Positions 3,033-62,226 of a stretch of DNA of 64,000 nt are shown piece by piece. The notes beneath the pieces were generated by a model, which saw nothing but the letters and a program-made list of their open reading frames with translations, was not told where the DNA came from and did no database searches. Positions within the stretch are counted from its first letter, which is position 1, and each line of letters begins with the position of its first letter. This DNA is from Ophelia neglecta (Eukaryota), in contig OZ260661.1 of NCBI GenBank assembly GCA_965285935.1, positions 46,314,001-46,378,000 of the forward strand. The letters are read 5' to 3'. A program made the translations under genes and the position numbers.

Positions 3033-3104
3033 TGCGTCGGCCGGGAGTCGAACCCGGATCGATTGCTTGGAAGGCAACCATGCTAGCCACTACACCACCG
3101 ACGC
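3033..3104 (-). tRNA. tRNA-Gly (anticodon TCC), second identical copy
   Basis: Identical 72-nt sequence to 1130-1201, with a T6 terminator at 3027-3022. Confidence 0.96.
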
Positions 3105-32500: not shown

Positions 32501-35500
32501 ATTAACACATGAGGAGGATTATTAAATTTGTGAAAGAGCTCCACAGTTAAAGCAGAGGAACAAATATATTTACACGATGGGTAAGGGTAATAATATGATC
32601 GAGGTAGTCTTTGTTAGATGTATTATAGATGTATTATAGCTGTCGCGTGTTCTCTCTAGCAGACAAAAGACCAATATTTGTCCCAAATTTCTATGCTTTG
32701 CTCATCGCATGAAGATCTATTGCATTTGTCGCCTCACTAGTCTTACAAGTAACTATGTTACCAATGACTAGTCTTATATAGCCCAAAATCAATACGAACG
32801 AGAGCCCAGCTCCTGATTACAAAACAGAATAGGCCTGTCATTAAACCCGTGTTTAGGTAAAACATCGAGACAAAAACTACGAACTACACGGGAAAACCCG
32901 TCTTTCATGAATAAAAAGCTGTTAATATTTCACTCTGAACTGAAATAGGAAACGCTCAATAGGAAACCACTTGAATTGCACACCGAAGGACAAGTTGAAT
33001 TAAACATATCTTGACTCGTATTTTCTTTTGAACCTTTTTTACGCGTTAAAAGCTTCTCCATTCTATTTCCATGGGTATGTCGGGATCTTGTGGTGCTGAG
33101 TGTTTTGACAGCTTTGTATAATATGTTTCAGCGTCAGATTTGATGATGAAAAGACGCAACTGAACCAACATGCCATAACAAGGATTTAGAAAGCTTCATT
33201 TGGGGGTACAATTGGCAATGACTCTTATAGTTTCTTGTTTCACTTATACACTGTTGAAAGAATGCGCGAAATTGTTATTTTTACATTTGAATTGCTTTGC
33301 ACAAGGTATTTCCTCAGCTATTATAGCACAGATGTCACATGTGTAATTTGAGAGGCGATAGTTAAGCGAGGCAATTCTACAACTCTGCTGAGAGAGATGT
33401 CTAAAGCGTGTCAAGATGGAGATCTCGGGGGGAAACAGTCGATCAGTTATTAATAAAGCTGCCCCTTGGGCAAAGATATGCACCTGTCTCAGGGTCCATT
33501 ATGACAAAAGTTGCGTGAATTGTTTAGGAAACACGCGATTTGCTTTCCTGAAGCGCTCATATCGGCGATAGCGGCGTAACTCAGCTGTCACCAAATCCGG
33601 CAATTTGAATCCGCGGGTCAGACGCTAACCGAGAAGTTCCCGGATGATTGACGTATCTTTCGTCCATTTTGCCATAGAGACGAAGAAATTTGACAAATTT
33701 GATGACAGAGGCGAGGCCCTGAGCTAGTTACATCATACAGGTCTGATAAATCAAATAACCTGTTCCAATGTGATTACAGTAATTTTCCCATCGAACAACA
33801 ACGCCTGTTTGCGGCTGTCACCAGCTAGTTTTGAGTTGCTTGACATAACGGTCACCTACTAATTCCACTAGCCAGTGATTGAAGCCTGGGGGCAACAAGA
33901 ATACATTATCTACTGTTCATGTCAGATATGCACCAATATTTGAAGCAAACACTCGAAAATAAACCACAGGGCCGATGTTACCAATGTGGACTGCTAAATT
34001 AGTCATGGACCTTCATTTGTACTTTGGACACATCGTGCCCTCGAAGCAATCACATATTTGGAATTCTGCTGGTTCATTTTATTGTTTAGGTGTTCATTAA
34101 GTAAGTTTCCACCACCTAAATCTAATATCCGTTTCAATCAGAACCTTCACTCTTGTCATTTGCAACGAATAGTAGAAGCTGGATGAGTCCAAATCTTTTG
34201 TCAGCCATTCCCCTTCCTGTCAACAAGTTTCAAGCGAGAGAAAATTGTTCAAATGGTGCTTTTCATTCTTCAGCGACGGCTAACGTGTAATAAAGTTTCC
34301 ACCGCTAATTCTGCAACGGGAAGATCCATGTTTGTGGTATTGTCATTGAATACAAATAGACGAGCCATTCTTGCAACGCACACTGCGGTTGAAGCTTCAT
34401 TTTCCTGCAGTTGAGTCATAAACGATGGTGATTTGTTGGGTTTGGGAAAATAGTCCAGTCACGTCTGCAGAGGTGACATACTGTCCACAACAGATAATGG
34501 CCATCCCACCTAATATGGTCAACATGCTGCTGGTACACCTATTCTCTTTGGTTCGCATGTAGTTTCCTCTATTTATACCTTGAACAATGAACGCTTACTA
34601 TAAATTCGTGCCAGAACCCTTAATAGTCCTAGCAAGCAGCAGCGGCTATAGCTAACCAATTTAAATAATGAAACAATAAAAACACAAACAAGCCGTCAAA
34701 GATTTCATAGTTTGTAAACATATGGGTTCAGTAATTGGATGATTGTTTTTTGTAAACAAAATCGATTTTAAATATATGGTGGGGAGGAGTAGACCTGCCG
34801 TGGAAAGCGATAGTTGACCTTTACATTTGCTATTCCGATTAGGAATCCTGTTCCCTTCGCGGTAATACTAAGCTAATCCTTGTTCTGCAAACAAAAGAAG
34901 ACGAGTGATTAATCAGTGCTTCATCTGCGGTTTCATTCCCGGGACTATATTCAGGGCGTAGTAATCCCCGATCGCCCCCGACACCTCGGCAGACGACACT
35001 GCCAGATCGCTGCATGACGCAGCTGCCTGCGCAGTCTCGTCTGAAAGAAACCTGTCGGGACTCACACCTGAGCTTACGAGAGATGAGCAGTTCTTGATAA
35101 TTGAACTTTTAGATTAGTTGCCCGATTAGAAGCGATCTTAGCAATTGTGTGAAACTAATCCCGGAATTAGTGGCTAATCTTCCGGTGGTGGCACCTTGGC
35201 CGAAAGCGTCAAGCGTTTCTTCAAGGACAAGTGTATTCAGCGACGGATGAAATATGAAGCTAATATTTCAGATTAAATCGCTCCTTATTTCCGCTGTTGT
35301 TATTTGGCATTTTATCTCCTTGGTTGTAATTCAACACAAAACCTTCCTACTTCCACTACGTCAAGTACATAAATTGCTATGAAATATGCGTGCTAAATCG
35401 GATCGGACCTTCCTGACAAACACATTGGTTGATTACCAAGCAACTGCCGAGATCGCGACTTTTCTAATGAGGCGGAAGTCGACTTTTGGAAGGAGTGTTC

Positions 35501-44700: not shown

Positions 44701-47700
44701 TCCTCCATTTTAGCGACACGGTTCAATCCGATTGCTTTTTCTGGTAAAAAGGCAATGGAGTTTGCAAGAAAAAACGGCACTGCTAAAATGCACTCTCGGT
44801 AAGGACATCACGAGAGCCAAACGTCATTGTTTTGAAACATGCCTTCCCTCGTTTATGTAAAATAATAATCTATAGGCTGGCTCTCCAAACAGAGATGGCC
44901 TGCATGCTGAGTTATGTATCAACCGATATAAGTACAGGGTGAGAGTTTTCTAAGTACAGTTTAATGGTTTGCATTTTCAGTGAAACAAAGAAGAAAGAGG
45001 CGTAGTTTCTTGTCGCAGTGTATACCAGCAGCACTTCTATAGGCCCATCGGAGGAGTTACAACGATTACATACCGCGGATTGACACAGGCGGTACCTCTC
45101 TCACTTGCCGCCCTATCATCCCACTATCTCTTCCAATATATTGGATTTTTCCCGTGGTTTAAATGGTGTTAGAGGCCCGAAAATCAATGGCAGTAAGCTT
45201 TAGAAGATTGCTGGCCTTCGCCCTGGGCGCACACCGTATTGAACGCAGATCCTAATTCCATGTCGGTGAGTTTCTAAAATAGCTTTGCCGCCTCCCAGCT
45301 TGCCCGGAATTAATATGGGTCCTGGCCCCGGTGAAAGTAGCACATGTTTTCTGCAGGACATTTCCTAAATGTGATAGGGCTACGTAGATCAAAAGGGAGC
45401 AAATTGGAGAGAAGGCAATGTCGACCTCAACAACCCGATGAAAATGATGCTTGTAGTGATTCCAGTATGGTTCATCAGTATGTCCTGCAGCCACCGGACG
45501 AAATTGTGAATTTCCTTAAACACATGTATAGTGAGCTACTCTCAGACCGCTAGAGTGGATTCGACTCAGTAAATGTCTTTTACATAGGCCTATATATATT
45601 GTGTGTTTATTGAGAATTTCATAGCCGCAGGCATATATTGCTGTTTTTGATTTGTCGTTTAATAAAGTCAAAACAATTATATAATTCGCATTAGAGAGAG
45701 AGAGAGACTCTTCCTCCCCTACCCCTGTCCTAAAACAGGTTAAGTTATTTAAAAAAATGATAATAAATACTAAAGTATACATAAACCTATATTCCCGTAT
45801 TTATAGTTTTGTTATTCCTGTATTATCTTAAATACTTGCATGTTGCCTCCACGCCATCAGACTTCCTTTGTTCCAGTAAGTCTGTACTATTAGTGGTTTG
45901 TCTTCTCCCGCTGTTCACTAACCGCATCCAACATGCGACCATTCCCTGTTAAAAAATTCAAACGCTGAATAAGTGGGTGCGATTTTGAAAGCATCTATTA
46001 CAATTGGACACCAGCGTGCTGGCAAATGCATGCCGATACTATGAGGTCAATAGAGCGTCATAATTGATTCTTACACAATTTATTTTACGGACACAAAATG
46101 CGCCGAGGCTATTTGGAGAAATTACCCTCAATCACTGACAGTGCCGCCCTGTTGGTTGTCTGGAAAATAAAATGTCGGTTACGTGTGGTTTACACAACAA
46201 AGAGGGGGAGAAGAGTGACACGCCATCCTCGCCAGTTTGAGAAGACCTAAATCAAGGTTAAAATAACAGTGATTATGAGGGGCGGTCAAGCTTGATTATC
46301 TGCTAATGGCCTATACCCGAGATGGCCAGACAGACAATGAGCCCAATTATACAACTCGCGTCCTAGACTCGACTTGACATGCCTGTTTTCAGACAAACAA
46401 ACTATCGATGACAGTTCGCCTTTCGATCCGGACCCTACCAGAAATGAGATCTCTTTTGTAGCCTGTCGGTGGGAGGTGGGTAATTTAGGCCCAGGGTGAA
46501 ACCCTCCCCCCGAGCTGGGTAGTGAATGTACCCCAGTCGGAGCCGAGGGGAACAAATGCCCCATAATGATGAGTTGAACATAATGGATAGTTTTGAATAT
46601 ATTATCACCTTCGCACAATTGAGGAAGAATAAAAAGTGTGTTTAGTAGTGCGGGTGTGGGGGCATTCTGGTGTAACCCCGAGACACCTCCCCGGGAGACG
46701 GGACCGAGGCAAAGGCACACGGACTAAATTTGCTTGTTCTCAACTGACAAAAGTGATGACACTTCTTTTCACCGTAGACTTCAGTTTGTTCAGGCATGTG
46801 AAAAATTTGCTTTTAGAAATCCCCCTCGCTAGGCACCATGGTAATTAAATTTAATGGCGGATCTGTTTTAATGGCTGAATAGACTGGCATCTCCTCATTT
46901 TAAGCACCTTTGTGTGGTATCCGAAATGGGAAATCGACGAAATCTAAACACCACAAAGTCGGTAAATATTTATCTCCCATGGGGTGATTTACAGATTAAA
47001 CCCCGGCTCTCCACGACCTGATATAAATCAAAACGGCGCGTCCTTTTGTGGGAGTTTTAAGCCTCCTATCTTCTTCTGGTCCCTAAAAGCCCCCAAATCG
47101 TCTCTTCTCAATACGTTAGCCAGATCCGACCACATGGGGTATCTAATCTTGTTTAAAAATAATATTGTATTGCGCGGTTTTGTGCTGGGGTGATATCATA
47201 CACCTGCTAGGGATTTGTCAAACCCGGCTCACTTATCATCTGACTTTCACAAATAACATACTGCCAAATTTAAAATTGGTACAAGTTTCATAAAGATTGA
47301 CAAGTTATTTATCATACAATGTTAAGAATGTGTAACAAATTTTCCAGTGTCCATTTTTATCATAACTTAATCGGATTGTCAGTTATTCAATCCAGTCTTA
47401 AGAGCGCACACAGGTTAGTAACACATGTGATACAATTTTAGATATAAAAAATATCAAATATTGCTATTTATATAAATACACATTCTTATAAATGCCTAGG
47501 ACTTATTGTCACTAGTACGTTATATGATTTCATTATAAAAGTTCGTAAGCGTTTTAGATGTAAAAAATAATTAGGTGTAAAAATGAATAAACAAATTCAA
47601 TGATTGAATAAAATAAATGAGTATTTAAGTATCAAAGAGTGTCAAGCTGAAAACATTCCAGGTTAGAGTTGTTTATCGCTTTCCAAGGGCCAGATAGAAA

Positions 47701-48209
47701 AAGTATTTTTCAGCCTGGCTCATCACATAGTCATAACACAACTAAAAGAACACAATTGATTACAGTGTATATATATTATCAAATTTACACCGTGTAATAG
47801 AATTTGATTCAATAAAACGAACAAACACCTTTTCAGTCGCCATGGAGGCCTAATTGGGGTATTTTAGGAGTATATTTGTAGGGAGTATATTTGTAGGGCT
47901 ATCGTGGGTGAAAAAAATTAAAATAAATATAGGAAAGCGTACTTAAGATTTTTGCATTTACAGCTAAAATTATTTCTTTGGTAATGAGAAGGATATTTTT
48001 TCTCCAGTAGCCTTCTTAACGACTTTAAATATGCTACTAAATACAGAATTCGTTGACTAATTTCCGATGAAATTACATTATGCAATTATTAATTATTTTG
48101 CTAGCGATAAATATATTTACTTAGTTCATATCTAAAGCCTGTACTAAGCGTTCAGGCTAAAAGATAAAATTGCAATGACACAAATTGGGTTTTCCATACG
48201 GGTAATAAT

Positions 48210-48215
48210 TTTATT
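48210..48215 (-). terminator. Candidate polyadenylation signal (AATAAA) for Six3/6
   Basis: AATAAA on the minus strand followed about 25 nt later by TTTGTGTC...TTTT. Alternative AATAAA hexamers lie at 49364-49369 and 48743-48748; I cannot choose among them without RNA data. Confidence 0.3.
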
Positions 48216-49668
48216 TGACTATACAACAAGCTACAATGAATCGTACGTGATGATTACGCCGTAGGTTTTCACAAAACATAATTACATTATGTAGCTTTAA
48301 AATAAAAATTAGATAGATTTTAACAAGTGTGTATAATAAAAAATAGTTATCAATACCACCAGTAACACCCTGTAGCCGGATTTTTTTTCTCTCACAATTC
48401 TGATGATACGATATGATGAAAAAATTCATTATGATAAAACTCATAATAATTAAATACCACTGTAATGACATTGAGTTGACATAATCATAGAGTTTTATAA
48501 TGACAAATATCAGTAATAAATAAATATCATTGCCTTGCAAAACCGGCAAAGCGAAAAAATTGTCTATGGCAAAGATTAATTAAACCATGTGATTGATATG
48601 AGTGTGCCATGCTGTTGCTTTAATCGCCGATTTTCTCAATCTCTATGAATGAATTAAGTGGTAAGGTTCAAACCAAGTGAAGAACAAATAGCATTGGGTT
48701 AAATATTACAATATTTTAACTATGAATAAGCACTCCATCTGCTTTATTGTGTATATTTGAATATATAAAGGCAAATATAATATCTGTTGCTAGAAGTTTC
48801 TACTGATACCATGCATTTATACCACTATATTATAGGCATACGACATGCCGGTTATTTAACACACGTATAATATCCAACATTTAAAATATTTGTTATAAGG
48901 ACAAACTTTAAACATAGCTTACTTTTACCAAAATAACGTTAAACGTTGAAACATACTATGCCAACCATAAACACTGAATCCATGGCAAAGGACAAGTAAA
49001 TAGTGTGATTTTGACAATTCATTTACATATAAGCAATGAGATATATTTCTAAATGTCTGCACATGAACTGGTATATAAGATATCTCAGTGGTTCAAATTT
49101 GACATCATAAATGTGTTGGGGGGGGGGGGGGGAGTTCTGACAGTTTGCAAAGTTCAGGTAATAAATAGCCATGTTTTTGCCCATGTACATTCTTGTCATA
49201 CGCCAAACAATACAGTTATGTGTGTGCAAAAACCAATTTGGTATACTATCGAGTTTTTTAATCTTTCAGAACTCCACCCTAGGCCTAACTATCACCCCTG
49301 TCTTCCTGATCATATCAGCAACACACAAGGTAGCCTGCCTATAGGCTATATGTGATACATATATTTATTTAGGCCAAATCATGCGCGTCGTATATTTTCA
49401 GATGTACAATTCATGATAGATGTTCTGTAAGCTCTGCCCTCTTAATTTACGCACTTGGCTATGCTTTTCGCCATGAAAAAAAGCACAAGAAGAAATTCCT
49501 TTGAAGTCTTGAAAACAATTATACCTTCAATGGTAAAGTGAACATGCAATCTTCAATTGTCAATGCGTATGCAGACAGACTAAATTGGCATCAATGTTCA
49601 TTAAATCCTGGGTTATATTATAGCACTTTTAGAGTATGTGCCTGCTTGCGCATGCAGATAAGCCGCGA

Positions 49669-50142
49669 TCAGTTCTTGTCCTTGTTGTAAAGACCGGCGG
49701 CTGGTACCCAGATTGGAAATGGTTGACTGAGAGGTACGTGAAGCGGCGGATGACGGAGAGGGAACGGTTTTTCTGGAGGGTATTCCCGTTGTCTACCCTC
49801 CCGGGGATTGTGGTCCCGGTACCGGGGCTCCCCGCCCCTCTCTTCCCCACATTTCTCTGGACTCTCAGGCATCCGGGGCGCCAGATGTCCTTCGCCCGTC
49901 CCGCGTTCATCTTCCCTTACGACTGTGCTACTGGCTAGTGCCTCTCTGCCTCCAGCCCTCTGGGGTGAACATACACCTAACGCGCTGGGTTGCCCTCCTC
50001 CCATCAGAGGAGACGCTTTAAAGTTCAGCCAGGCTGGCATTGGGGCCTGCATTCCTTCTCGACTGAGCCCGCCCGTGCTCGGTTCCTCGCTGCCCTCGCC
50101 CGATGGGCGAGGACGCGAGTCCTCCCAAGGGCGGGCTGCTAG
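49669..50142 (-). CDS. Six3/6: Putative stop-codon readthrough extension of Six3/6 (157 codons after the recoded UGA; extended protein 435 aa)
   Basis: Stop context is GCA TGA CTA G. The frame stays open to TGA 49671-49669; ORF-track entry 49669..50052 is its 3' part (50142-50052 = 90 nt, in frame). High GC persists to the second stop and then drops. Confidence 0.7.
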   Translation of the reverse strand, partial: LAARPWEDSRPRPSGEGSEEPSTGGLSREGMQAPMPAWLNFKASPLMGGGQPSALGVCSPQRAGGREALASSTVVREDERGTGEGHLAPRMPESPEKCGEERGGEPRYRDHNPREGRQREYPPEKPFPLRHPPLHVPLSQPFPIWVPAAGLYNKDKN

Positions 50143-50144
50143 TC
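50061..50144 (-). promoter_or_regulatory. GC-rich RNA stem-loop immediately 3' of the Six3/6 UGA (candidate readthrough stimulator)
   Basis: Basal stem AGCCCGCCC (50137-50129) pairs with GGGCGGGCT (50074-50066). Apical hairpin CTCGC-GTCCTCGCCC-ATC-GGGCGAGGGC-A-GCGAG (50119-50086) gives 15 bp with one G-U pair and one bulge. Paired by eye. Confidence 0.7.
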
Positions 50145-50341
50145 ATGCGGGATTCTCCCGAGCTTCCGTCCCCGCGCCAGTGGAGGAGGAGGGGGTGGAG
50201 GCCGGGGAGAGCGAGAGGGAGGGACTAGTGGGAGGAGAGTCGCCTACCACGTCCGGTTCCTCCAGATCATCCTCGTCGTCCGTCTCGTCACGTAGTCTCG
50301 ACTGCATGCCACTCGAACCCGCTCCGCCATGATTCAACAAT
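50143..50341 (-). CDS. Six3/6: Six3/6 coding exon 2 up to the first stop (acidic, Ser/Pro-rich C-terminal tail; full protein 277 aa)
   Basis: Strong acceptor with compatible phase, and a GC-rich island in AT-rich flanks. Reads (R)LLNHGGAGSSGMQSRLRDETDDEDDLEEPDVVGDSPPTSPSLSLSPASTPSSSTGAGTEARENPA*. The KNRL...SGM.S pattern resembles vertebrate SIX3. TGA is at 50145-50143. Confidence 0.88.
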
Positions 50342-53300
50342 CTGTAACAACAAAAACAAAATGTAGGAAATTTCTATAACATAGTCTATTCTAACTCGAC
50401 ATCTACTGAGCATTCACTGAAGACAATATTAACATTTATTTTTAATATTATAGTGTGTACACAGTCGAAATGTTTATTTCGATTCACATCTTACTTTCTG
50501 GAGTATATTGGGCAAAGAAATAAATGAGTTACACTGAGGTAGGGGTGATACCTTTGCCTATATAGACATATTATTCAATTAAACAATGATTACAATCATG
50601 CCTATACAGGCTCATGTGTCTATATCTAAAGCAGTAAATCTTCCAGCCCGTAGAGATGTATACGGGAATAACGATACACGGAAAGATATTAAATATATTA
50701 GGCATAGGCCTATAGTATATATAGGAACAAGTAGATGATGTAAAATCGATCTAGAATGGAACTAAAACCATAAGTATATTATAGGCCTATAGCGAGTGGT
50801 GATAATAGACACGAAGGGGGCTGATCATTGAGATTCTCAAGACAGCCCTCAATCAGAAAAGAAAATAGCAAAACTAACTTGCGCAGGCTTGTTTTTCCTG
50901 TAAGCTGTAAGACATTTATGCTTAGACCCATTTTGAATCTCTATGCCTCAAGAGGTCGTACATTTCTTTAATTGTTACGGGAGTTTGCTTTATTATAGGC
51001 CCATATACATACTTTTTCGTTTCGTTGTTACGTGATTCATATTTTAACGCCTAGACTAATATAATTATTCGATCTAGGCCAATATTTTCCGTTATTCTTT
51101 TTATATGCTTTTATAAACATTTCTTTGCTAATGGAAATCCGGTTTTTTACAAGTTGGGTATTTCATTTCCAGCTAGGGGGGATTTATAATGTTTATATTT
51201 TCTTTGCGAATATATCATTCGTTAATTGTTAAGAGTTCGGTTTTTTTGCACATAAAATTTGCCATGCATATGGCTATTTTATTTTATTTAAATATGTTTT
51301 ATAGTTTTACAACAAATTCGGCGTTCATATAAGGAATCACACAAATAACGGCGATAGCATTTCTCCTTTACTATGAAAATCGTGCGAGAACCGTTGACCT
51401 ATACACGTTCTACGTATTTTCACTTTTCTTTTGTTAACGGCTACTTACTTCCGTTAACCTAGTAATCTTTAGACGTCCGTTTCTAGTGGTCAACTGAATG
51501 AAATAAACTCGAGCATAAGTGATGGCTGGTTAGTCTCTTCTCTGGTGTTCACTTTATAAACTAACCAATAGTTATCTCCTAAGGGTCTTTAATGAAAGAA
51601 ACTGTTAAACAACTAATAAGTGTTTCTATGGGTGCTTGAGTGATACTAACGATATTTAAAGCATCTTTGTACAGTAGCTGTCAGACTTTCTTCAATTACA
51701 AAAGTGACAAATTCCTTAATGGATCTGCCCCCATTTAACCACAATACCAGCTCCACTTTCCTGCTTGGCGCACAAACATGATTGAATGCTGGTATAGGCC
51801 CATTCATTCTTCAAACATTCGCCCACCGCTTGCATCTTTTAGTGTTCTGTATGCGCTCGGAACTGCTAATGATGTCAAGAGCATTGTTTCTATTTAGTTT
51901 TCCGTACAATATCAGAGAGCCTTACAAAATCAATGATAGTCATTACGGCTGGGGAGAACGAGAATAGCCGGGTGTCGTTTCTCAGCGGGTTTGATATCAC
52001 ACGAGCTTTGGCTAGGAAACTGACAAGGAAATAAGCTATCGTTATCCTTTTGCCGAAGAAATGCCACGGCTGGGACTGTCAACAAAACAGACAGGTGTTT
52101 GGTAAACCCGGCAGCACTAAATGACAGCTTCAGATTTATTAGCTCAAGGTAATAATGAGTTTTTCTTCACCACCAAAAAAAAGTATGATATGGCATGGAT
52201 AATCTTAGAACTATATAAGCATACATGGAGGAGAACATAAGTACTATAAAGATATATAATTAACAAACTGTTCTTTGTCCACTAAAACAGTCAGTAACTT
52301 AACACTCAAGCCCGACTATAGGCCCGGGCTATGGAATTATTTTAATAAATAATTATGAACAAATGTATCCGTTCATTTTTATATTAGACGGACAATTATT
52401 TTGTTATGATTCACAAAAACAGATATATTCACTTGCAAATCAATATGTTATGCTGTGTTGACAATATTTGCAACTCAGATTTAACATATTATGTATCAAA
52501 AATATAGTAAGCGGATGTGCATTTCCGAAAGCTATGGCAAAAACAGTAAGAGCCTCAACTATAATATTCAATAACTATAGGGTTAGATTGGTTCATCAGA
52601 GAGCTGGAACTCACAGACAAAAACACCTTTGTTGGATTCTTGTTATGATCATTACTGAGCAAAACAAAAGTACCATGAATTCGATTTGAGAGCTTGAAAT
52701 TTACTCTTATAATATAAAAGATAATATTTACAACGTGAGCGAACGGAAAAGAAGGCCTCATCTTTAACCCCTATAGGCCTATAGGACCTAGACACAAAAT
52801 ACCTACAATTCATCAGTCTGTATTTATTTTCTATCCAACGAATTGATCGATAACACTTCACTTGTAGTTTGGATACATAAGACATCAGTACAAGTATAGT
52901 AGACCGACCCAGAAGTCGACAGATAGTATGTATAAATCCCCGTCGAGTTCCAGAGTTATATATTCTATACCGTCCACCTATTATCGCCCGATGAGAACTT
53001 CGTTCGCTATAGGACCTTATCATTGCTGAGCACCGAGTTTATAAAGCTATTAGATTCTAGGTACTCGAGATAAAACTCAGTTGTTGTTTATTTTTCTTCG
53101 GCCCTGGCAGCTTGTTTTGCTTTATCGAACCTTCCATCATAATTATGCACAGATACATGTATGGGAACATTTATAGGCGCAGATAAGACGACTTAATGAA
53201 AAATGACAACGCCGGCAATGTTGTGCACGCAAACGCTGCTGTTCTGCGTAATTATATTAAGTTATTATACTCAATCTCACTTAGTATCCACACTTCTCTC

Positions 53301-56300
53301 CTTTCGAAATGAAATCGTTCCACCGCGTAGGATCTCTCCGGTTAACGTCACACAGAGAGATTCATTTACATCGAACAAGCGCAATTATTGCATTTTCTTG
53401 ATCAACATGATCACTGGCAATAAGAAAAGATTAATGTTGGTGCCAGGTAGATGTGAACTTAAAGCAGCATGCAGGCTTATTTGTTTCACTGGAAATATTC
53501 TGTCACGAAGCACAACTGATTCCATTTTATAACTGTAAATTATATGTATTCGTCAATTTGAACCAGCTACCATTAAGCGTTCATATAGGTCCTAAATCTT
53601 ACCCTTATCTAAAAGAGTGGTCATTTTCTTTAACCACTTCAGTTCTGAATTTCCTGACATTATTAATAACAAACATTTAGAAAATAGCAGCATTTAAAAT
53701 GAGTACCCCAATTATTCATAAGAGAAAACTAATCATATCAATAGATATGTTTTATTCTCATGCTCTGGGGAATGAAAGGCAGGTAACTTTTACGCAATCA
53801 TGAATGGGTTGCTATGTAAACGAGAAAGTACAAAATTTTAACGGTTTTTTATTTTTTAAAGTATATATCATAAATAATATTTTTGAATTAATCGTTTTAT
53901 AAACAAATGTCCTGCATCTGAATCTACATCAAAAACTATCAGACACATGTTTCTTTTCAATTTTGAGACTTCTCCTTCATTTAACTATAGATTTTTTAAA
54001 TGAATAGGCCTAATTGCATGTTAAATATAATATTTGCTACAATACATTTTACATTTATGACTGAAGAACTGCATATTATATTTGAAATCTGCTAAAACAA
54101 AATTGTTCTTAACCAATGAGGGTAATTGACAAAGTCATGAGGCCAATTTTGCAACTAAATCATTAAATTCACTTGGAAATGAACCAAATCTTGATGATAT
54201 TCAATGTTTAAAAGATCCAAAGATCCAAATATATTATTTTATTCTGTATACCGGCCTATAAGAGGTTAGGGGAATATCCCCTATACTAGTCATACTTATA
54301 TACATATATACATACACCGTATACATATGGTCTTGAGTATTTGGATTGAACGAGTATTTGGATTGAACGCTGAAGTTAGTTCAGGGACACGTAAAAGCCT
54401 TCTGCGAGTTGAGAAATTGGCCAAACACTTCTTAACTCTATACTGCTTGGGGTCAGTAACTAAATATGTTCCATTACAGCACTAAGAACCAGTTTATTAA
54501 CTGATTGTGACCGAAAGAGGGCCTAGCTCCCAAGATCCGAAATAATAGCAGCACAGCCATTGTGCGCCTGTCAATCTCAACCTTCAAGAATGTAGCTTGT
54601 TTCACTCAGCCAGCCCCAGGTCGTCGAGTTTTAGGGGCTATGAATAGCATCACCGGATTTCTGTTTGTGCAAAAATAACAATTGAAATGTAGAAGCGCAT
54701 ATCTTTACCAATCAAACAATGATTCACTTCGAAGTAGGACACTGTTAAGCAAGCTCTCTTGTTTGAATACTGAGTGACATCAGTGGGACGGCAAACTGAT
54801 TTTCCCTCTGGGTCTGAGAGAACGACACAACTCGACAAATGAGGCCCCAGACCAAACCAGAAGAGAGATTTTGAGGCCTCATATAGGCCTATCAAAAGGA
54901 GAAAATAAATACCATATCGTTATATTTCGCACGTATTGCTCACCATTTGAACTAGGCTAGTATGTATTTTAATCTATAGCCATTTTCTTTAAGAGCTACC
55001 TTCTTTAATTGCCGTTCATCTCATGTTGAAACTTCAAACCAACTCATCTCTTCGTTTTAAATGGTTTGAGAGATTTCTTGGGTTTCCACTAGGAACATAA
55101 ACTAACATACCTAGCCAATCAAAATACGAGAAGCACGTCTGGAACTTTTATACTGATCCAGGCCAACTGTTGGCACTCAATATCGGTCTAAAATGACTGT
55201 TTATCTCCTTGTACTTCTTAATTTGCATTTAGAATTACCTTAAGAAGTGTCAATTAGGCTCCAATATGGGAAAAAATAAGAATTCATTTGGTACTTCAAA
55301 GGTTTAGCAGACGAGTGTGCACAAGAGGTGTACTAATGTGTTTTTTCCTCGACGAATAGTCCTCTTAGCTTGCGCAAATACGACTTTCCATTTAGAGCGA
55401 TAATGGGCCAAACAAGTAAATGTGCCCTTAAACGGATCGGCTGTAGACAACGAATAGAGAGAGCAAATAGAGTAAAATGTCCGGGGCTCGCTGTCCCTGT
55501 ATATAAACATATCTATGTGTATGAATACCACCTCAGCTCACCGCTAAGCCAATAACTCGTCATTGATCTCCTAATCGATCACAACCAGCATGAGAAAATA
55601 GAGACAAACTTTAGAACCGGGCTCATGACACATTTTCAAAAACACTGGTTGCTTACTGTTTGAAATAACTTTCAATGCACATTATCGTAAACATTTACTT
55701 AGTATCTTTGTGTATTGCAAGGTGTCAATGTGGCTTAAATTGTAATTGAAATAAAATTTCTCCCGCGGGGGGAGGGGGAGGTCCTAGGCAGATCTTCTGA
55801 CCTTCTGAGTATTTAATTGTACATATTTACAGAGTTAAAAATAATAAAAACCGATAGTTGTGAGGAAACAGTTAGAGGGCCAATTACGTCTCAGTATTTC
55901 AATATCTTTCAATCTGCTTTCCGTATTCTTCCGATTCTCAGAAACTATTAATTTCCTCTAGTTCAAAAACCATTTAAATTGCATTCTTCTTCTGATAAAT
56001 ATGAAACCGTCATGGTAACATTTACGAGAGAAAAAAACCAAGACATGTACAAGCAATAAAAACATATCTCACACGCTTATTAATTTTGATGAAGCAAAAT
56101 AATCTAGTTCTTAATACTGCACCATGAAATATAGTAGATTTGTTGCAGTAGAGTTAGTGCCTGAACAGACCTGTGTGTCAAGAGAAATAAATATAGACCT
56201 TTAAATTCACGTTTTCTGACTAATCTCACATTATTTGACACGATCATGGCTTGTACTAACAAATGTCATTTACTTGTGGTTAGACTCCCAGCGTCAATTG

Positions 56301-59300
56301 CTGTACAGACTCTGACCAAATCCCGCTAACAAATTTAGGAAAATGTAATAATGGGGGAGCAGGCCGCCACGTCGCCTCTGAGAGTTTCCTGACACCTAGG
56401 TCATTATCTCGAGGATAAATTTCATCGGGTGAAAGTGTCTCGGAGAGTCTTAAGATCCAGAGCGAGGGGACTAAGAGCTCTATGCCAACCTCTTCACACA
56501 ATGAACCCACCAAAAACTTAGAAAACTCTCCAAACCCTCTCGACAAAGTCTCTATTTAGCCCCATTTAGCAATAAATTGGATTGCTATGTCGTAGTGGTC
56601 TTGATATTGCACAATCTGTCTGCTTACATTTGTCTCTCGCTGTGATATTTATTTAGGAGATTTGTGAATATTGCAATTGTGAAATTGTTTCCGTGACAAG
56701 AATTTGAAATCCCGTGAATTAAAACTATGTTATTTTCTAGTAGGCATATATTGGCGAATTTTGTGTCAATTTAAGGACGCCCCCTTCCGAAACATAACCG
56801 ACGTGATAATGAAACCCGACACTCACAAGCTAATTGCAGGTTGTAATTTAATTTACACGAACATGGGCGGTCAGAGTTCATTTTTGGAGAGTGATTTGCC
56901 GCTAATTACTCTGAGTATCTGGCATGACCTCCATCGCCAAGGCAGCCATTTTGTGTGAAAGGAACGCGGTTTGTTTTGGTCAGTACACTACCTCAATATT
57001 GGCCTGATCCCTTTCTGTTGGTGTGCCAAAGTGACCAAAATCACATAAGAAATATTTGAGAAAGCTATTTAGAAACAATAAGAGCTAACAACAGAAGGTG
57101 TTCTGAATTACAGTCAATGTTGACAGTATACTTGTGCTGAAATCGTTACTTTAATCAAGACGGGGCAGGAAATTCGAGGGGATATTGAGAATAGAGTGCT
57201 TGCTCTTAATCATTATGCAGCAATTTGTTGACAGTGCGACAACACGGCACATGATATGACCATGATAATCTACGATTAACATTAACACAAGTAAAGTCCG
57301 TTTGATTTGAAATGTGTTTCACCGTTGGCACCTGTGCCTACGATGGCAGGATATAATTTGTCTCCGTGTTTACATTCAGTCCGGTCCAGACATCGATCAC
57401 TCGGATACTTTACTTTTTACATTGTTCCTGGCTCTGTGTAAATAAAGGATTCCATCAATTCTGAAGCTATTTCGTTTTCTGATTGGCTGCCTTTCATTTA
57501 GACAGATGGGGCATTTACAGCGCGGCAAAAAGGCCAGACGACACATACAGGCAAACCGTCGAGAAAGCCAACTTATAGTTATATGTGTAGATCTTTTCTC
57601 AAGCTGTTGGAAAGCGCTATAAGTGTGTTGAGAACAGATGACACGATATTTATTGTCCAAAGGACATAAAAGTTAATGCAGAAGTATTTTGGTTGATTTA
57701 GTCTAATTAACTTAACCTTAGCCATGGAATTTTCCCAGCATTGAGGCAATAAACGATGAGGATCGACCTGCTGTATACTCTTACCGGACTGGTTACATTA
57801 TCCTTCGATCGAGATATCGTTCATACAAAGCATATTAACGCGGTTTACTTAATTGTACACCATTGATGAGTCCTATATTTTATATAAGATTTTGTTATCC
57901 ACCCTCATCTAGTCGATATTATTGCATTTTCTGTATAACATTTATTTGTGTCAGCTGCCAGCCGAGCCGACGCGTAGCTTTCCAGTACAAGATAATCGGT
58001 AATTTTGGATAGCCAAGCCATCAAACGTGCCCGAAGCTTTGATATTTCTCGCCCATTTGCCAATGAAGATCTAAGTGAGCACACTTGTGACGGAGAAGAG
58101 AACATCTCTGCATGTTGTGACAAAAGACTCATCATGGAGCCGACACAATGAGCAGAGCTCTGTGCTGCCTGGCACAAAGACCCGCTGATGAAGACTCTTG
58201 TCGGCTGCTCAACGCGGTATCAGTCGTCTGCCTCGAGGCGGCCAGCCCGGGAAATCGACAAATGTTGTAGCAACTGGGGATAAATATTGAAAGCTCTCTT
58301 GATTGACCATTTTAGGCTTAACGAAGCGGAAGGCACTGCGGGTCAAACGCTACTTTGCCGGGCTAGTTCGCTGAGTAATGTGTAGGCAAAGTCCGGCAGG
58401 TTGACTCCGGGCGGTTTTTGACAACGATACTAGATTGAGTCGGAACAACAGATTGAAGCTTTTTGCACCCTTTATGATCCCTTGAATTAAATTTCACCAA
58501 TGGCAGTTTCATACAGCCAGTATACAAAGCATGCACAAATGTATGTAGGCCAATAGCTGCATTTACCATGCAGGCCAATGTAAGCCTACAAATATGTCTA
58601 GCCCCCCTTTTGTATATAATCTGTGTTGACATTCGACTGAAATAGGCACCTAAAAAATTGCGAATCTAAAGCAACCTGATAGAATTTAGTCGAGTTACAT
58701 CCTGTTTGGTTTATACCGTTCTGTGAAATAATTAGAGGGAAAACTGAACCATTGACTGAGAAATATCAATATCTGGATTAGATGAGCAATGTGTCTATTA
58801 AGTCAGTGAGAGTATAAGGCTTCCAGCTGGAGGGAAACTTCTCTGTAATTACTTAAATGTCCTCGATTGGTGGTCAGTAAGCAATCAAAGTCTAGCTTCT
58901 CACATCTTCCACAATAACACACTCGGCTTTCCGGAGGCGATGGCCAACTGGCCATTTCGTTTTGTCGAAGTTGGCAGTACAGTCAATCACATCGCATGCT
59001 GCTCATGGCTCACTGCATAGTCAATTTCCTACTAAACGTCACTTAATTTGGCGTAAAGTTGTAGAATAAATCGGGGAATTAATTAGAGGATGTTTGTTTC
59101 TGTGGAAATGATAACGTTATTAGATGCATTAGCGTAGATGAAAGGGCATACAAGAGCAGAAAATCTGCCCGATATCCTAGTTCAACAACAGGCCTATCCA
59201 AGCATGCGTGGAATGATGGCGATCATGAGCAGGTTCATTATCAAGATTATTACAACATGCACAACCCATTTGATCTTCGAATGTGCAATACTCGATTGAA

Positions 59301-61591
59301 TTATCATTGAATCTCTTCAGATACATTGCCGTTTTCATCGAGGCGAGGTGATGACAAATTCAGCCCTCATTGCTTTTTTCCTTTAGACCTATACAATACG
59401 TAATTGCATGCAACCAACGTCATGTTCAGGCGGTCTTTGTCAGAATACGGATGCACCCACATACTTGACAGTCTCGTCTGACTATGGTTGTCTAAAAATG
59501 TCACGTCAAAACTGTGCCGTGTTCGTATGTACTGGTTTGTGAAATGTTGGCACTGAATGCCCCGAGGCCTTGGAGCAATATTACCACTATCACTCTCAAT
59601 AATAACATACTTATAACTCTTCAAACTGCCAAAGAAAATATGATTATTGAATAATATCCTAAAGGTCATATATTCCAAAGAATACAACCCGAAAACCAAT
59701 AACTCTCTGAGAAAAGGCTTGTCCCATAGTATGCTAGACAACTTTCAAGTTGTTACCAAGCAGGGATGCAGCCCTTTCTTTACAGCCAGAAGAGCCATTC
59801 TTATTGTCATATATTTTATTTGCAGAAATATATATATACACCTATTAGCAGTCCAGGCTTTTTATTCAAACACTAGGAACAAAGGAAAAATATCATTTCC
59901 ACATCTCTAAGCTGTATGTATCATTCAAGTGCCTGAGTGTTTACAGACAGCAATACCTTTTTATCCTAGCTTTTCATGTGAAATTAAAATGGTGGTACTA
60001 AGCCTTAACGCGGTCTACCTATGCTATAGCCACTCGTTTTAGTTGGGCCTTTAATATATAAACTAAAATGTCAATCTCGGCTTCTTGTCACATTTCTACA
60101 TATTAAGAATGGCAGTATTCTTCGGGGTGTTCATTTTTGTGCACAAATGATAATCGGAGTCCTTTAATTCCGAAGATGCGTTCTTAGCTTTCAATCCAAC
60201 CCTCAGTGATATTTTCTGCCTCAACTCGCAGCTCAAAGTTGGGTTATTATTGCTGTGCCGTGTAAAGGCCTATGATTGAGTTGTCCTAAATGCTATAGAA
60301 TTTTACAAGAATGGCGTGGCGTAAATCGTACTTTTGCTGTACCACTTCAGCGATAAAACTTCGACAATATCATTTTCCCCGACTAAATTGAGTCTGCCGG
60401 CTTTGAATGACGTAACTGATGCCTGAACATTTCAATAAAATATATGGATTGTACCTAATCAAGAATAAACGATTGTGGAGTGCATTAGAACGATGGGAAA
60501 CAAGTTTTGGAATCTAATCAGAGGGAATAGTGTGTGTTTGGCGCCATACAAAGAATATTATTGGTGGCTGTAAGGACTTTTTAAGTCCCATCCAATGTGC
60601 TAGTTGGTCTGGTGAACCACTCATCATAATGATAGCTTTTTGAAAGCCTTCAAAACTAATACTCCGCCATTACGTCAAATGGTCGACGAAAATAAAGCGT
60701 ATTAACACCGTGCTGCTGACGCAATGACACCTCAGTTTGCACTTATTCAGGTTATGTAGTCTTATATGCGTATTGTGCTTTCTTTTAATTCGATTTGTAT
60801 TTGATAGAAAGGGTTTAGCGGTGTGTGTTATCTTAGCACGGCTGGCAGCATTCAATAGGCGGTATTCCCATCAAATTAAGCATGTATCGCTGACACGAAA
60901 AGTATTGGTCTCGGGGGCTATGACCAGCTGGTTGGTTATTTCAACATCATTTCACTTCTAAAGGCAAAATATTGTAAAACTGTCGCTGATATTTTTCAAT
61001 TAAATTATATGAATGGACGGACAAGTTGCGATTCAAACGGAAGGTTAATATTGCGCTTTGATTTTTTGTAAATATCGCTCCAACATGGCGGAAGAAAAGT
61101 GAACTTTCTGGAGTTCGTTTGACTGCATGTGTGCTAGAACTCGTATTGAATTCGAGGCCGGCCAACATTCCTTAACAAATATGAAACGCTCGATAAAAAA
61201 CACAGCGCCAACTATTGACATTTACACTACAACTCCCATTCGACTTACATACCATTAATTTCCATTCTTAAGAGGGCGTGAAGAACAAGCCCGATTTGAC
61301 CGCTTTATTAATCATATTAAGGGATTGCCATAGCAAATGCTTGATTAGTAGATTTGAATACTAAATGTGTGTTCCACGCTGTGTATGTTTAGTTTACGGA
61401 TCATGGCCTTAGAAAGGCGAGAGCGGACGGATAAACCAGGCAATTTCTTGTCAAATACTTGACATCTGTGAGTGGTTAAAGGACATGTCAATTGGGAAAC
61501 GGATACAGGACACTTTGCACCCAATTTCCCTCTAAGAGTTTAAAGTTCGGTATAGGCCTAGAGCTGAAGGACAAAAATGAAGAAATCGTAC
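50342..61591 (-). other. Six3/6: Six3/6 intron (11,250 bp, GT-AG, phase 2)
   Basis: Donor AG|GTACGA at 61591. Acceptor TTTTGTTTTTGTTGTTACAG|A ends at 50342. The join restores AG+A = Arg and continues in frame (KNR-LLNHGG). The position just after the homeodomain is typical for this family. Confidence 0.88.
54335..54368. repeat. Perfect 17-bp tandem duplication (GAGTATTTGGATTGAAC x2)
   Basis: Directly visible. Confidence 0.85.
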
Positions 61592-62226
61592 CTGTTTTTG
61601 GCTGCCGCGGCCCGGTCTCGTTGTCTGCGGTTTTTGAACCAGTTGCCCACCTGGGTGGGGGTGAGTCCTGTTCCCTGGGCCAACTCACGTTTCTTGGCGG
61701 GGTTGGGGTACGGGTCCTGCAGGTACCATTCCCTCAGGAGGTTCCTTGTCCTCTCCTTGAAGCAGTGTGTCTTTTGCTCTCCGTCCCAGATGGTCCGGGG
61801 CAGGGGGAACTTCTTTCGGACGCGGTACTTGTCGACGGGCCCGAGGGGCCTGCCCCGCAGCCTCTCAGCCTCCTGGTAGTGGGCTTCCAACCACATAGCT
61901 TGCAGCTTGGCATGGGACTCCCTGGTAAACTTGTGGGTTTCCAGGATGTGGTACAAGTCCTTAAAATTGCCGGTGTGGAAGGCTACCAGACAGCGGGCCC
62001 TAAGAACAGATTCGTGTCTGTTTAGGGCGTCGCAGGCGGAGGGGTTGACGGGCAGGGACCACAGGAACCGTCCGAGTCTCTCGATGTCCCCGCTCTCTTC
62101 CAAAGTCTCACAGACCTGTGCCACTTGCTGCGGGGTAAAGTTGAGGGTAGGCAAGGGCGGAAACATCATGATCAATCCCGGGGGGAAGGGGCTAGGCTGG
62201 CCAGGCGGGCCCTGAAGCCCCTTCAT
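61592..62226 (-). CDS. Six3/6: Six3/6 (optix-like) homeobox transcription factor, coding exon 1 (SIX domain + K50 homeodomain)
   Basis: Translation contains [35 protein letters not shown] (SIX domain start) and [68 protein letters not shown]. The QKTH tetrapeptide is diagnostic of the Six3/6 subfamily. First in-frame ATG is at 62226 (gcaATGa); the ORF track start at 62250 is a GTG. The exon ends at AG|GTACGA, a phase-2 donor inside the Arg of KNR. Confidence 0.97.

Follow-up and report, generated by a model that had tools for sequence, protein, structure and literature searches.

We found that the most stable RNA hairpin of the window (the whole 64-kb stretch of DNA analysed) begins within the UGA stop codon of a Six3/6 homeobox gene, and that it is a real and exceptional structure. 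Since this hairpin is located where known hairpins cause stop codon readthrough, a longer Six3/6 protein is probably made. On balance, we favour the reading that the stem-loop acts as a proximal stimulator of UGA readthrough in the Six3/6 mRNA, like the stem-loop of Drosophila dfr/vvl. The coordinates of the gene, the hairpin and the open frame behind the stop are collected in Table 1.

Table 1. Features of the Six3/6 locus, the stem-loop and the downstream open frame (positions in the window)
Feature	Position	Strand	Basis
Six3/6 exon 1 (SIX domain and homeodomain)	61592..62226	-	Translation, coordinates, protein identity
Six3/6 intron, 11,250 nt	50342..61591	-	GT at 61591 and AG at 50343-50342, read from sequence
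Six3/6 exon 2 coding part, acidic Ser/Pro-rich tail ending ...ENPA	50146..50341	-	72% amino acid identity to relative P0123
Six3/6 stop UGA, followed by CUAG at 50142-50139	50143..50145	-	Read from sequence
Extended stem-loop, ~84 nt, ~35 bp	50061..50144	-	RNAfold, shuffles, window ranking
Basal helix GACU/AGUC, overlapping the stop	50144-50141 with 50061-50064	-	RNAfold
Perfect 9-bp stem, +9 (A50137) to +17	50137-50129 with 50066-50074	-	RNAfold
Apical 15-bp hairpin: 5 bp, one-nt bulge A50091, 10 bp; loop AUC 50104-50102	50119-50086	-	RNAfold
In-frame open extension, 157 codons, GC-rich	49672..50142	-	ORF reading, shuffles
Second in-frame stop, UGA-U	49669..49671	-	Read from sequence
First AATAAA past the gene, ~300 nt beyond the second stop	49364..49369	-	Read from sequence

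The window is animal DNA of about 40% GC with few long open reading frames. Protein searches, made separately for each exon, identified the minus-strand two-exon gene as Six3/6, and the UGA closes its last exon. Exon 1 starts at the ATG at 62226 or at an orthologue-like MMF start at 62169, and is 84-95% identical to annelid, mollusc, nemertean, brachiopod and vertebrate SIX3/SIX6 proteins (PF16878 and PF00046). The 3' end of this exon is AG, followed by the donor GT at 61591-61590 (phase 2). The acceptor at 50343-50342 is pyrimidine-rich, and exon 2 begins at 50341 in the correct phase with a coding part of 65 codons. The resulting junction is in frame (AG+A = Arg), and the same AAAAKNR-L junction is present in orthologues. 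This gene model confirms that the stem-loop lies on the sense strand of a genuine Six3/6 terminal exon; the gene had already been called Six3/6 in another note on this DNA.

The 762-Mb assembly of its own genome contains the gene once, and neither exon 2 nor the extension has a paralogue there. We also identified a Six1/2-like SIX/homeodomain exon (68% identity; L008, G000:C1:46257372-46257926, plus strand) and a Six4/5-like one (61% identity; L009, G000:C1:64199663-64200193, plus strand) on the same chromosome. The Six1/2-like exon is located about 57 kb before the start of the window, indicating that Six genes are linked here. Elsewhere in the window, two tRNA genes, 1130-1201 and 3033-3104 (-), have equal Rfam scores and lie about 1.9 kb apart, and are probably a tandem duplicate.

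RNAfold of 50050-50148 (minus strand) gave 35 pairs, only 2 of which are G-U. The sequence agrees with the earlier description of a stem-loop after the UGA, with one coordinate corrected: position 50144 is the G of the stop codon itself (UGA, 50145-50143). The perfect stem that had been placed 5 nt after the stop is present, beginning at +9, and the apical hairpin with its AUC loop was reproduced in the MFE structure; both have pair probabilities of 0.97-1.0. The proposed pairing of the GACU overlapping the stop was likewise found in the RNAfold structure, where it forms the basal helix. Between the 9-bp stem and the apical hairpin, the middle part is irregular, with pair probabilities of about 0.83, and the UUGG/CCGA segment described there did not appear because the MFE takes another register. 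A small alternative hairpin that had been thought to compete for the same bases does exist, but at -8.2 vs -22.5 kcal/mol for the apical hairpin the competition is negligible at equilibrium. When the 8-12 nt after the stop were forced to be single-stranded, as they would be under a terminating ribosome, the remainder folded at -46 to -51 kcal/mol. The sense strand fold is 6.8 kcal/mol more stable than the antisense fold.

The comparison with dinucleotide-shuffled controls that had been asked for gave an MFE of -61.4 kcal/mol for 50040-50150 (minus strand), against -44.5 +/- 3.6 kcal/mol in 200 shuffles (z -4.7), and none of the 200 shuffles was as stable. In a sliding scan, the 100-nt window 50160-50061 reached a z of -7.7, while every other window of the GC-rich block was near 0. 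When the 64 kb was scanned on both strands in 6,390 windows of 100 nt, the stem-loop ranked first, both on raw values and after regression on GC. Taken together, the shuffles, the scan and the ranking show that the stem-loop is not a by-product of composition.

These data bear on the possibility of a chance or neutral GC-rich inverted repeat behind the stop, with no function. Stable folds and long open frames are both common in GC-rich DNA, and the hairpin occurs once in the genome and belongs to no family. However, shuffles that keep the dinucleotides never reach its stability, its first rank among all windows is hard to reconcile with chance, and its 5' arm is kept in a relative whose neutral sites are saturated. 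We therefore regard a functionless repeat as very improbable.

After the stem-loop, the most stable local structure of the window lies at 34941-35080 (minus strand), where a 161-nt fold has an MFE of -69.8 kcal/mol (z -4.0). This structure has no Rfam match, and its 3' arm contains a 10-nt string that we take to resemble the start of miR-34.

One related species, P0123, was found via the exon-2 peptide, on Tara Oceans metagenome contigs. Its two 518-nt contigs (L015 and L016) are one base apart, at position 96, and are genomic DNA, since they contain the intron end, the acceptor and exon 2 at 72% protein identity. The occurrence of this relative's genomic DNA in open-ocean metagenomes suggests a planktonic species or a larva. 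Compared with exon 2 of Six3/6, the coding part of P0123 is 63% identical overall, and where the amino acid is unchanged, the third codon position is 41% identical (17/41). The synonymous sites are thus near saturation, and the divergence is deep.

The best-conserved 29-nt stretch of the exon, by contrast, comprises its last three codons, the UGA and the 17 nt that follow, with 27 of the 29 positions identical. The P0123 contig ends at +17, and the comparison downstream of the stop thus covers the 5' strand of the 9-bp stem only; within this stretch, which includes that whole strand, 15 of the 17 nt are identical (P 9e-5 at synonymous-site identity). The UGA and the +4 C are both kept. Such identity beside near-saturated synonymous sites indicates that selection acts on the stop, on the +4 C and on the 5' stem strand, and that the stop is old. 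This makes it unlikely that the open frame is a relic. Selection on the hairpin as a whole, as an RNA element of the Six3/6 mRNA, is part of the readthrough reading, to which we give a modest preference.

Two changes were found after the stop in P0123. The first, A50140 to G, falls in a bulge of the stem-loop. The second, A50137 to G, affects the first base of the 9-bp stem and turns the A-U pair into G-U (with U50066) or G-C. When the 5 comparable codons are read in the readthrough frame, each change alters only a third position and leaves the amino acid (Leu, Ala) the same. The CUAG motif behind the UGA is not conserved, as P0123 has CUGG. A search of the metagenome contigs with a degenerate pattern of the stop region gave no further match.

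Two artefacts could be set aside with these data. The UGA is neither a recent nonsense mutation nor an assembly error, since P0123 has the same UGA. A foldback assembly artefact was rejected as well, since the two arms do not match perfectly and independent data also contain the 5' arm.

The structure and the conservation of the stop region also bear on ADAR editing, in which A50143 of the UGA would become inosine and be read as UGG (Trp), so that the extension would arise through stop-loss editing and not through ribosomal readthrough. Editing of the A of a stop codon by ADAR is the basis of stop loss at the hepatitis delta amber/W site. Here, the stop lies within a helix (A50143 is paired with U50062 at a probability of 0.999 in RNAfold), the duplex comprises about 35 bp, and the stop region is conserved at the nucleotide level. 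However, A50143 has a 5' G, the least favoured neighbour of an edited A for ADARs, and the basal helix that holds it is merely 4-5 bp long and lies past a bulge. We consider ADAR editing improbable. If it did occur, the hairpin would be an editing switch that erases the Six3/6 stop in the RNA of some cells, and the product would be a transcription factor longer by 157 residues, a cellular counterpart of the hepatitis delta site.

Beyond the stop, frame 0 is the sole open frame of the six across the extension: the other two sense frames contain 6 and 5 stops, and the antisense frames contain 3-4. The frame is open throughout in 1% of dinucleotide shuffles of the extension itself, and shuffles of the 700 nt after the stop gave an equally long open frame in 0.17%. 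The extension belongs to a GC-rich block (0.54-0.70 vs 0.28-0.44 in the flanks) that begins with exon 2 and ends at about the second stop. Its GC3 is 0.56, compared with 0.67 for the coding part of exon 2 and 0.78 for exon 1. The codon log-odds of frame 0, scored with a table from five homeobox exons of the same genome, were marginally positive, between true exons and non-coding controls, and came mostly from missing stops. GC3 and codon log-odds thus gave no coding signal in the extension beyond stop avoidance.

No relatives of the extension peptide were found by word-based protein search or in the metagenome contigs, and the extension has no Pfam match. An exhaustive HMMER search returned two bacterial repeat proteins, which we rejected as homologues because a short PAWLNF..GG.P motif was counted repeatedly over their repeats. 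The ESM Atlas recognition scores of the extension (1091) and of the true coding tail (1323) are both low, and therefore uninformative. On the opposite strand, exon 2 and the extension are overlapped by an open frame of 174 codons (49808-50332, plus strand), with a TTG start and no Pfam match, which we take as a by-product of the GC-rich sense frame.

These results also allow a different role for the hairpin, as a conserved 3'UTR element that serves mRNA stability, localisation, protein binding or the control of termination and recycling. There would then be no recoding, and the open frame would simply result from the GC-rich composition. Neither the structure nor the conserved 5' arm needs translation by itself, the extension is without homologues or a clear codon signature, and 1% of its shuffles stay open. 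However, the position at +9 after UGA-C matches that of readthrough stimulators exactly, the stop's own frame is the only open one among the six, the GC-rich block ends near the second stop, and both P0123 substitutions are synonymous in the readthrough frame. A 3'UTR element would thus explain the structure and the conservation, but neither the uniquely open frame nor the exact position. We judge it unlikely, although we give it serious weight.

Three further roles, even when taken together, are highly improbable. The length of the hairpin is within the range of microRNA precursors, but there is no Rfam match (46000-51000 at E up to 10; whole window at gathering score), and a 3-nt loop and a GC content above 70% are poor features for processing by Drosha and Dicer. 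Stimulation of a -1 frameshift could use a -1 frame that is open for about 45 codons past the stop; however, 50160-50138 contains no X_XXY_YYZ slippery heptamer, and one shifted frame meets a UAG at once. The stop could also be skipped by alternative splicing, as an in-frame donor-like GT at 50247 and an acceptor-like AG at 49961-49960 (minus strand) could in principle remove the stop and the hairpin, but this would leave the conservation at the stop unexplained.

We then compared five distant spiralian Six3/6 orthologues, from Tubulanus, Owenia, Lingula, Mytilus and one transcriptome contig. Their stop is either TAA or a TGA that lacks CUAG. The frame past it stays open for 0-18 codons, and there is no structure there (z -0.7 to +1.7). 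The whole arrangement is absent from these five orthologues, which indicates that it is lineage-restricted. At the loci of the two closest exon-1 matches (L002 and L014), exon 2 was not reached within 10 kb.

Readthrough remains our favoured reading of the hairpin. Two of the features expected at such a site are present, namely a weak stop context (UGA-CUAG, 50145-50139) and a stable structure about 5-9 nt after the stop (the 9-bp stem at +9). While a ribosome has the UGA in its A site, the 9-bp stem would lie at the mRNA entry channel along with the apical hairpin, which is very stable. The hairpin, together with the weak UGA-C context (here UGA-CUAG), could then delay or disturb termination by eRF1, so that a near-cognate tRNA would decode the UGA in a fraction of ribosomes. 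Translation would run for 157 more codons to the stop at 49671-49669 and yield a C-terminally extended Six3/6 isoform, whose tail would probably be disordered. From the sequence evidence, we infer that the RNA adopts this fold in the cell, that the fold stimulates readthrough, and that the extension is translated and put to use.

The +9 position, the stability (also with the ribosome's footprint kept unpaired), the sense strand, the stop context, the open frame, the conservation in P0123 and a first poly(A) signal that lies beyond the second stop all argue for readthrough. The unconserved CUAG, the lack of an extension homologue or a GC3 excess, the marginal codon log-odds, the lineage restriction and the short spacer argue against it. 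The earlier note had called the hairpin the structural half of a recoding signal. This claim stands as far as the exceptional hairpin, its +9 position and its conserved 5' strand are concerned, but not for the conservation of CUAG or the competition between two folds.

UGA-CUAG is the most efficient cellular readthrough context known, and UGA-C is a weak stop in general (PMC4132726). In alphaviruses, several plant viruses and the Drosophila genes headcase and kelch, readthrough is stimulated by extended stem-loops located 6-12 nt past the stop (PMC3159437), and the spacers of other readthrough stimulators range from 5 to 9 nt (PMC3159437, PMC4132726). In Drosophila dfr/vvl, which encodes a homeobox factor, a stem-loop spans +9 to +59, and the region from -18 to +68 is conserved at the nucleotide level (PMC13170385). 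Readthrough of dfr decreased when the stem was deleted, moved by 3-9 nt or weakened, and increased when it was strengthened (PMC13170385).

The dfr gene is similar to Six3/6 in several respects: both are developmental homeobox transcription factors with a stem-loop from +9 and a long extension, and in both the nucleotide-level conservation runs from just before the stop into the stem. In contrast, dfr has a UAG and a stem-loop of about 50 nt, whereas Six3/6 has UGA-C(UAG) and a far more stable structure of about 84 nt (about -60 kcal/mol). The dfr stem has also been validated by experiment, whereas that of Six3/6 is known from its sequence and one partial orthologue.

The vertebrate readthrough genes OPRL1, OPRK1, AQP4, MAPK10 and MDH1 share the UGA-CUAG heptanucleotide found in this species (PMC4132726). 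Among these vertebrate genes, however, CUAG is universally conserved and mostly works without structure, whereas for Six3/6 the stem sequence is kept and CUAG is not (CUGG in P0123). ACP2 has a conserved stem-loop that starts 6 nt after the stop (PMC4132726). The alphavirus, tobravirus/furovirus, headcase and kelch signals resemble Six3/6 in their UGA-C stop, short spacer and long stem of at least 10 bp that encloses further structure (PMC3159437). They differ in that their enclosed loops are often 50-270 nt, their spacers measure 7-12 nt and their stems are backed by covariation (PMC3159437), whereas Six3/6 has a 5-nt spacer, at the short end of the known range, and one compact, nearly continuous hairpin known from the full sequence of one species.

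A stem-loop a few nt past an in-frame UGA is also found in selenoprotein N, where it acts as a Sec redefinition element, and the UGA of Six3/6 could accordingly be read as selenocysteine. The spacer of 5-6 nt between the UGA and the stem-loop resembles that of this SEPN1-type element, and such stem-loops are mentioned in PMC4132726. However, the selenoprotein N element requires a 3'UTR SECIS, and none was found here, either in 46000-51000 (Rfam, E up to 10) or in the whole window (gathering score). There is also no redox motif around the UGA, and Six3/6 is not a selenoprotein in any orthologue seen. The selenocysteine reading is thus close to refuted.

Throughout the animals, Six3/6 acts as a key regulator in the patterning of the anterior and apical nervous system, and our literature search gave no paper that connects this gene or any other Six gene with recoding. 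The mechanism itself is already known, and the gain would be a new case, in a gene family and an animal group without prior description, and not a new principle. If readthrough occurs as proposed, mechanistic work would gain a natural stimulator of unusual strength and compactness. Readthrough aided by a stem-loop in developmental homeobox genes, so far shown for Drosophila dfr, would then extend to a spiralian-type marine invertebrate, and one gene would give two transcription factor isoforms that differ by a 157-residue tail, with their ratio set at the ribosome.
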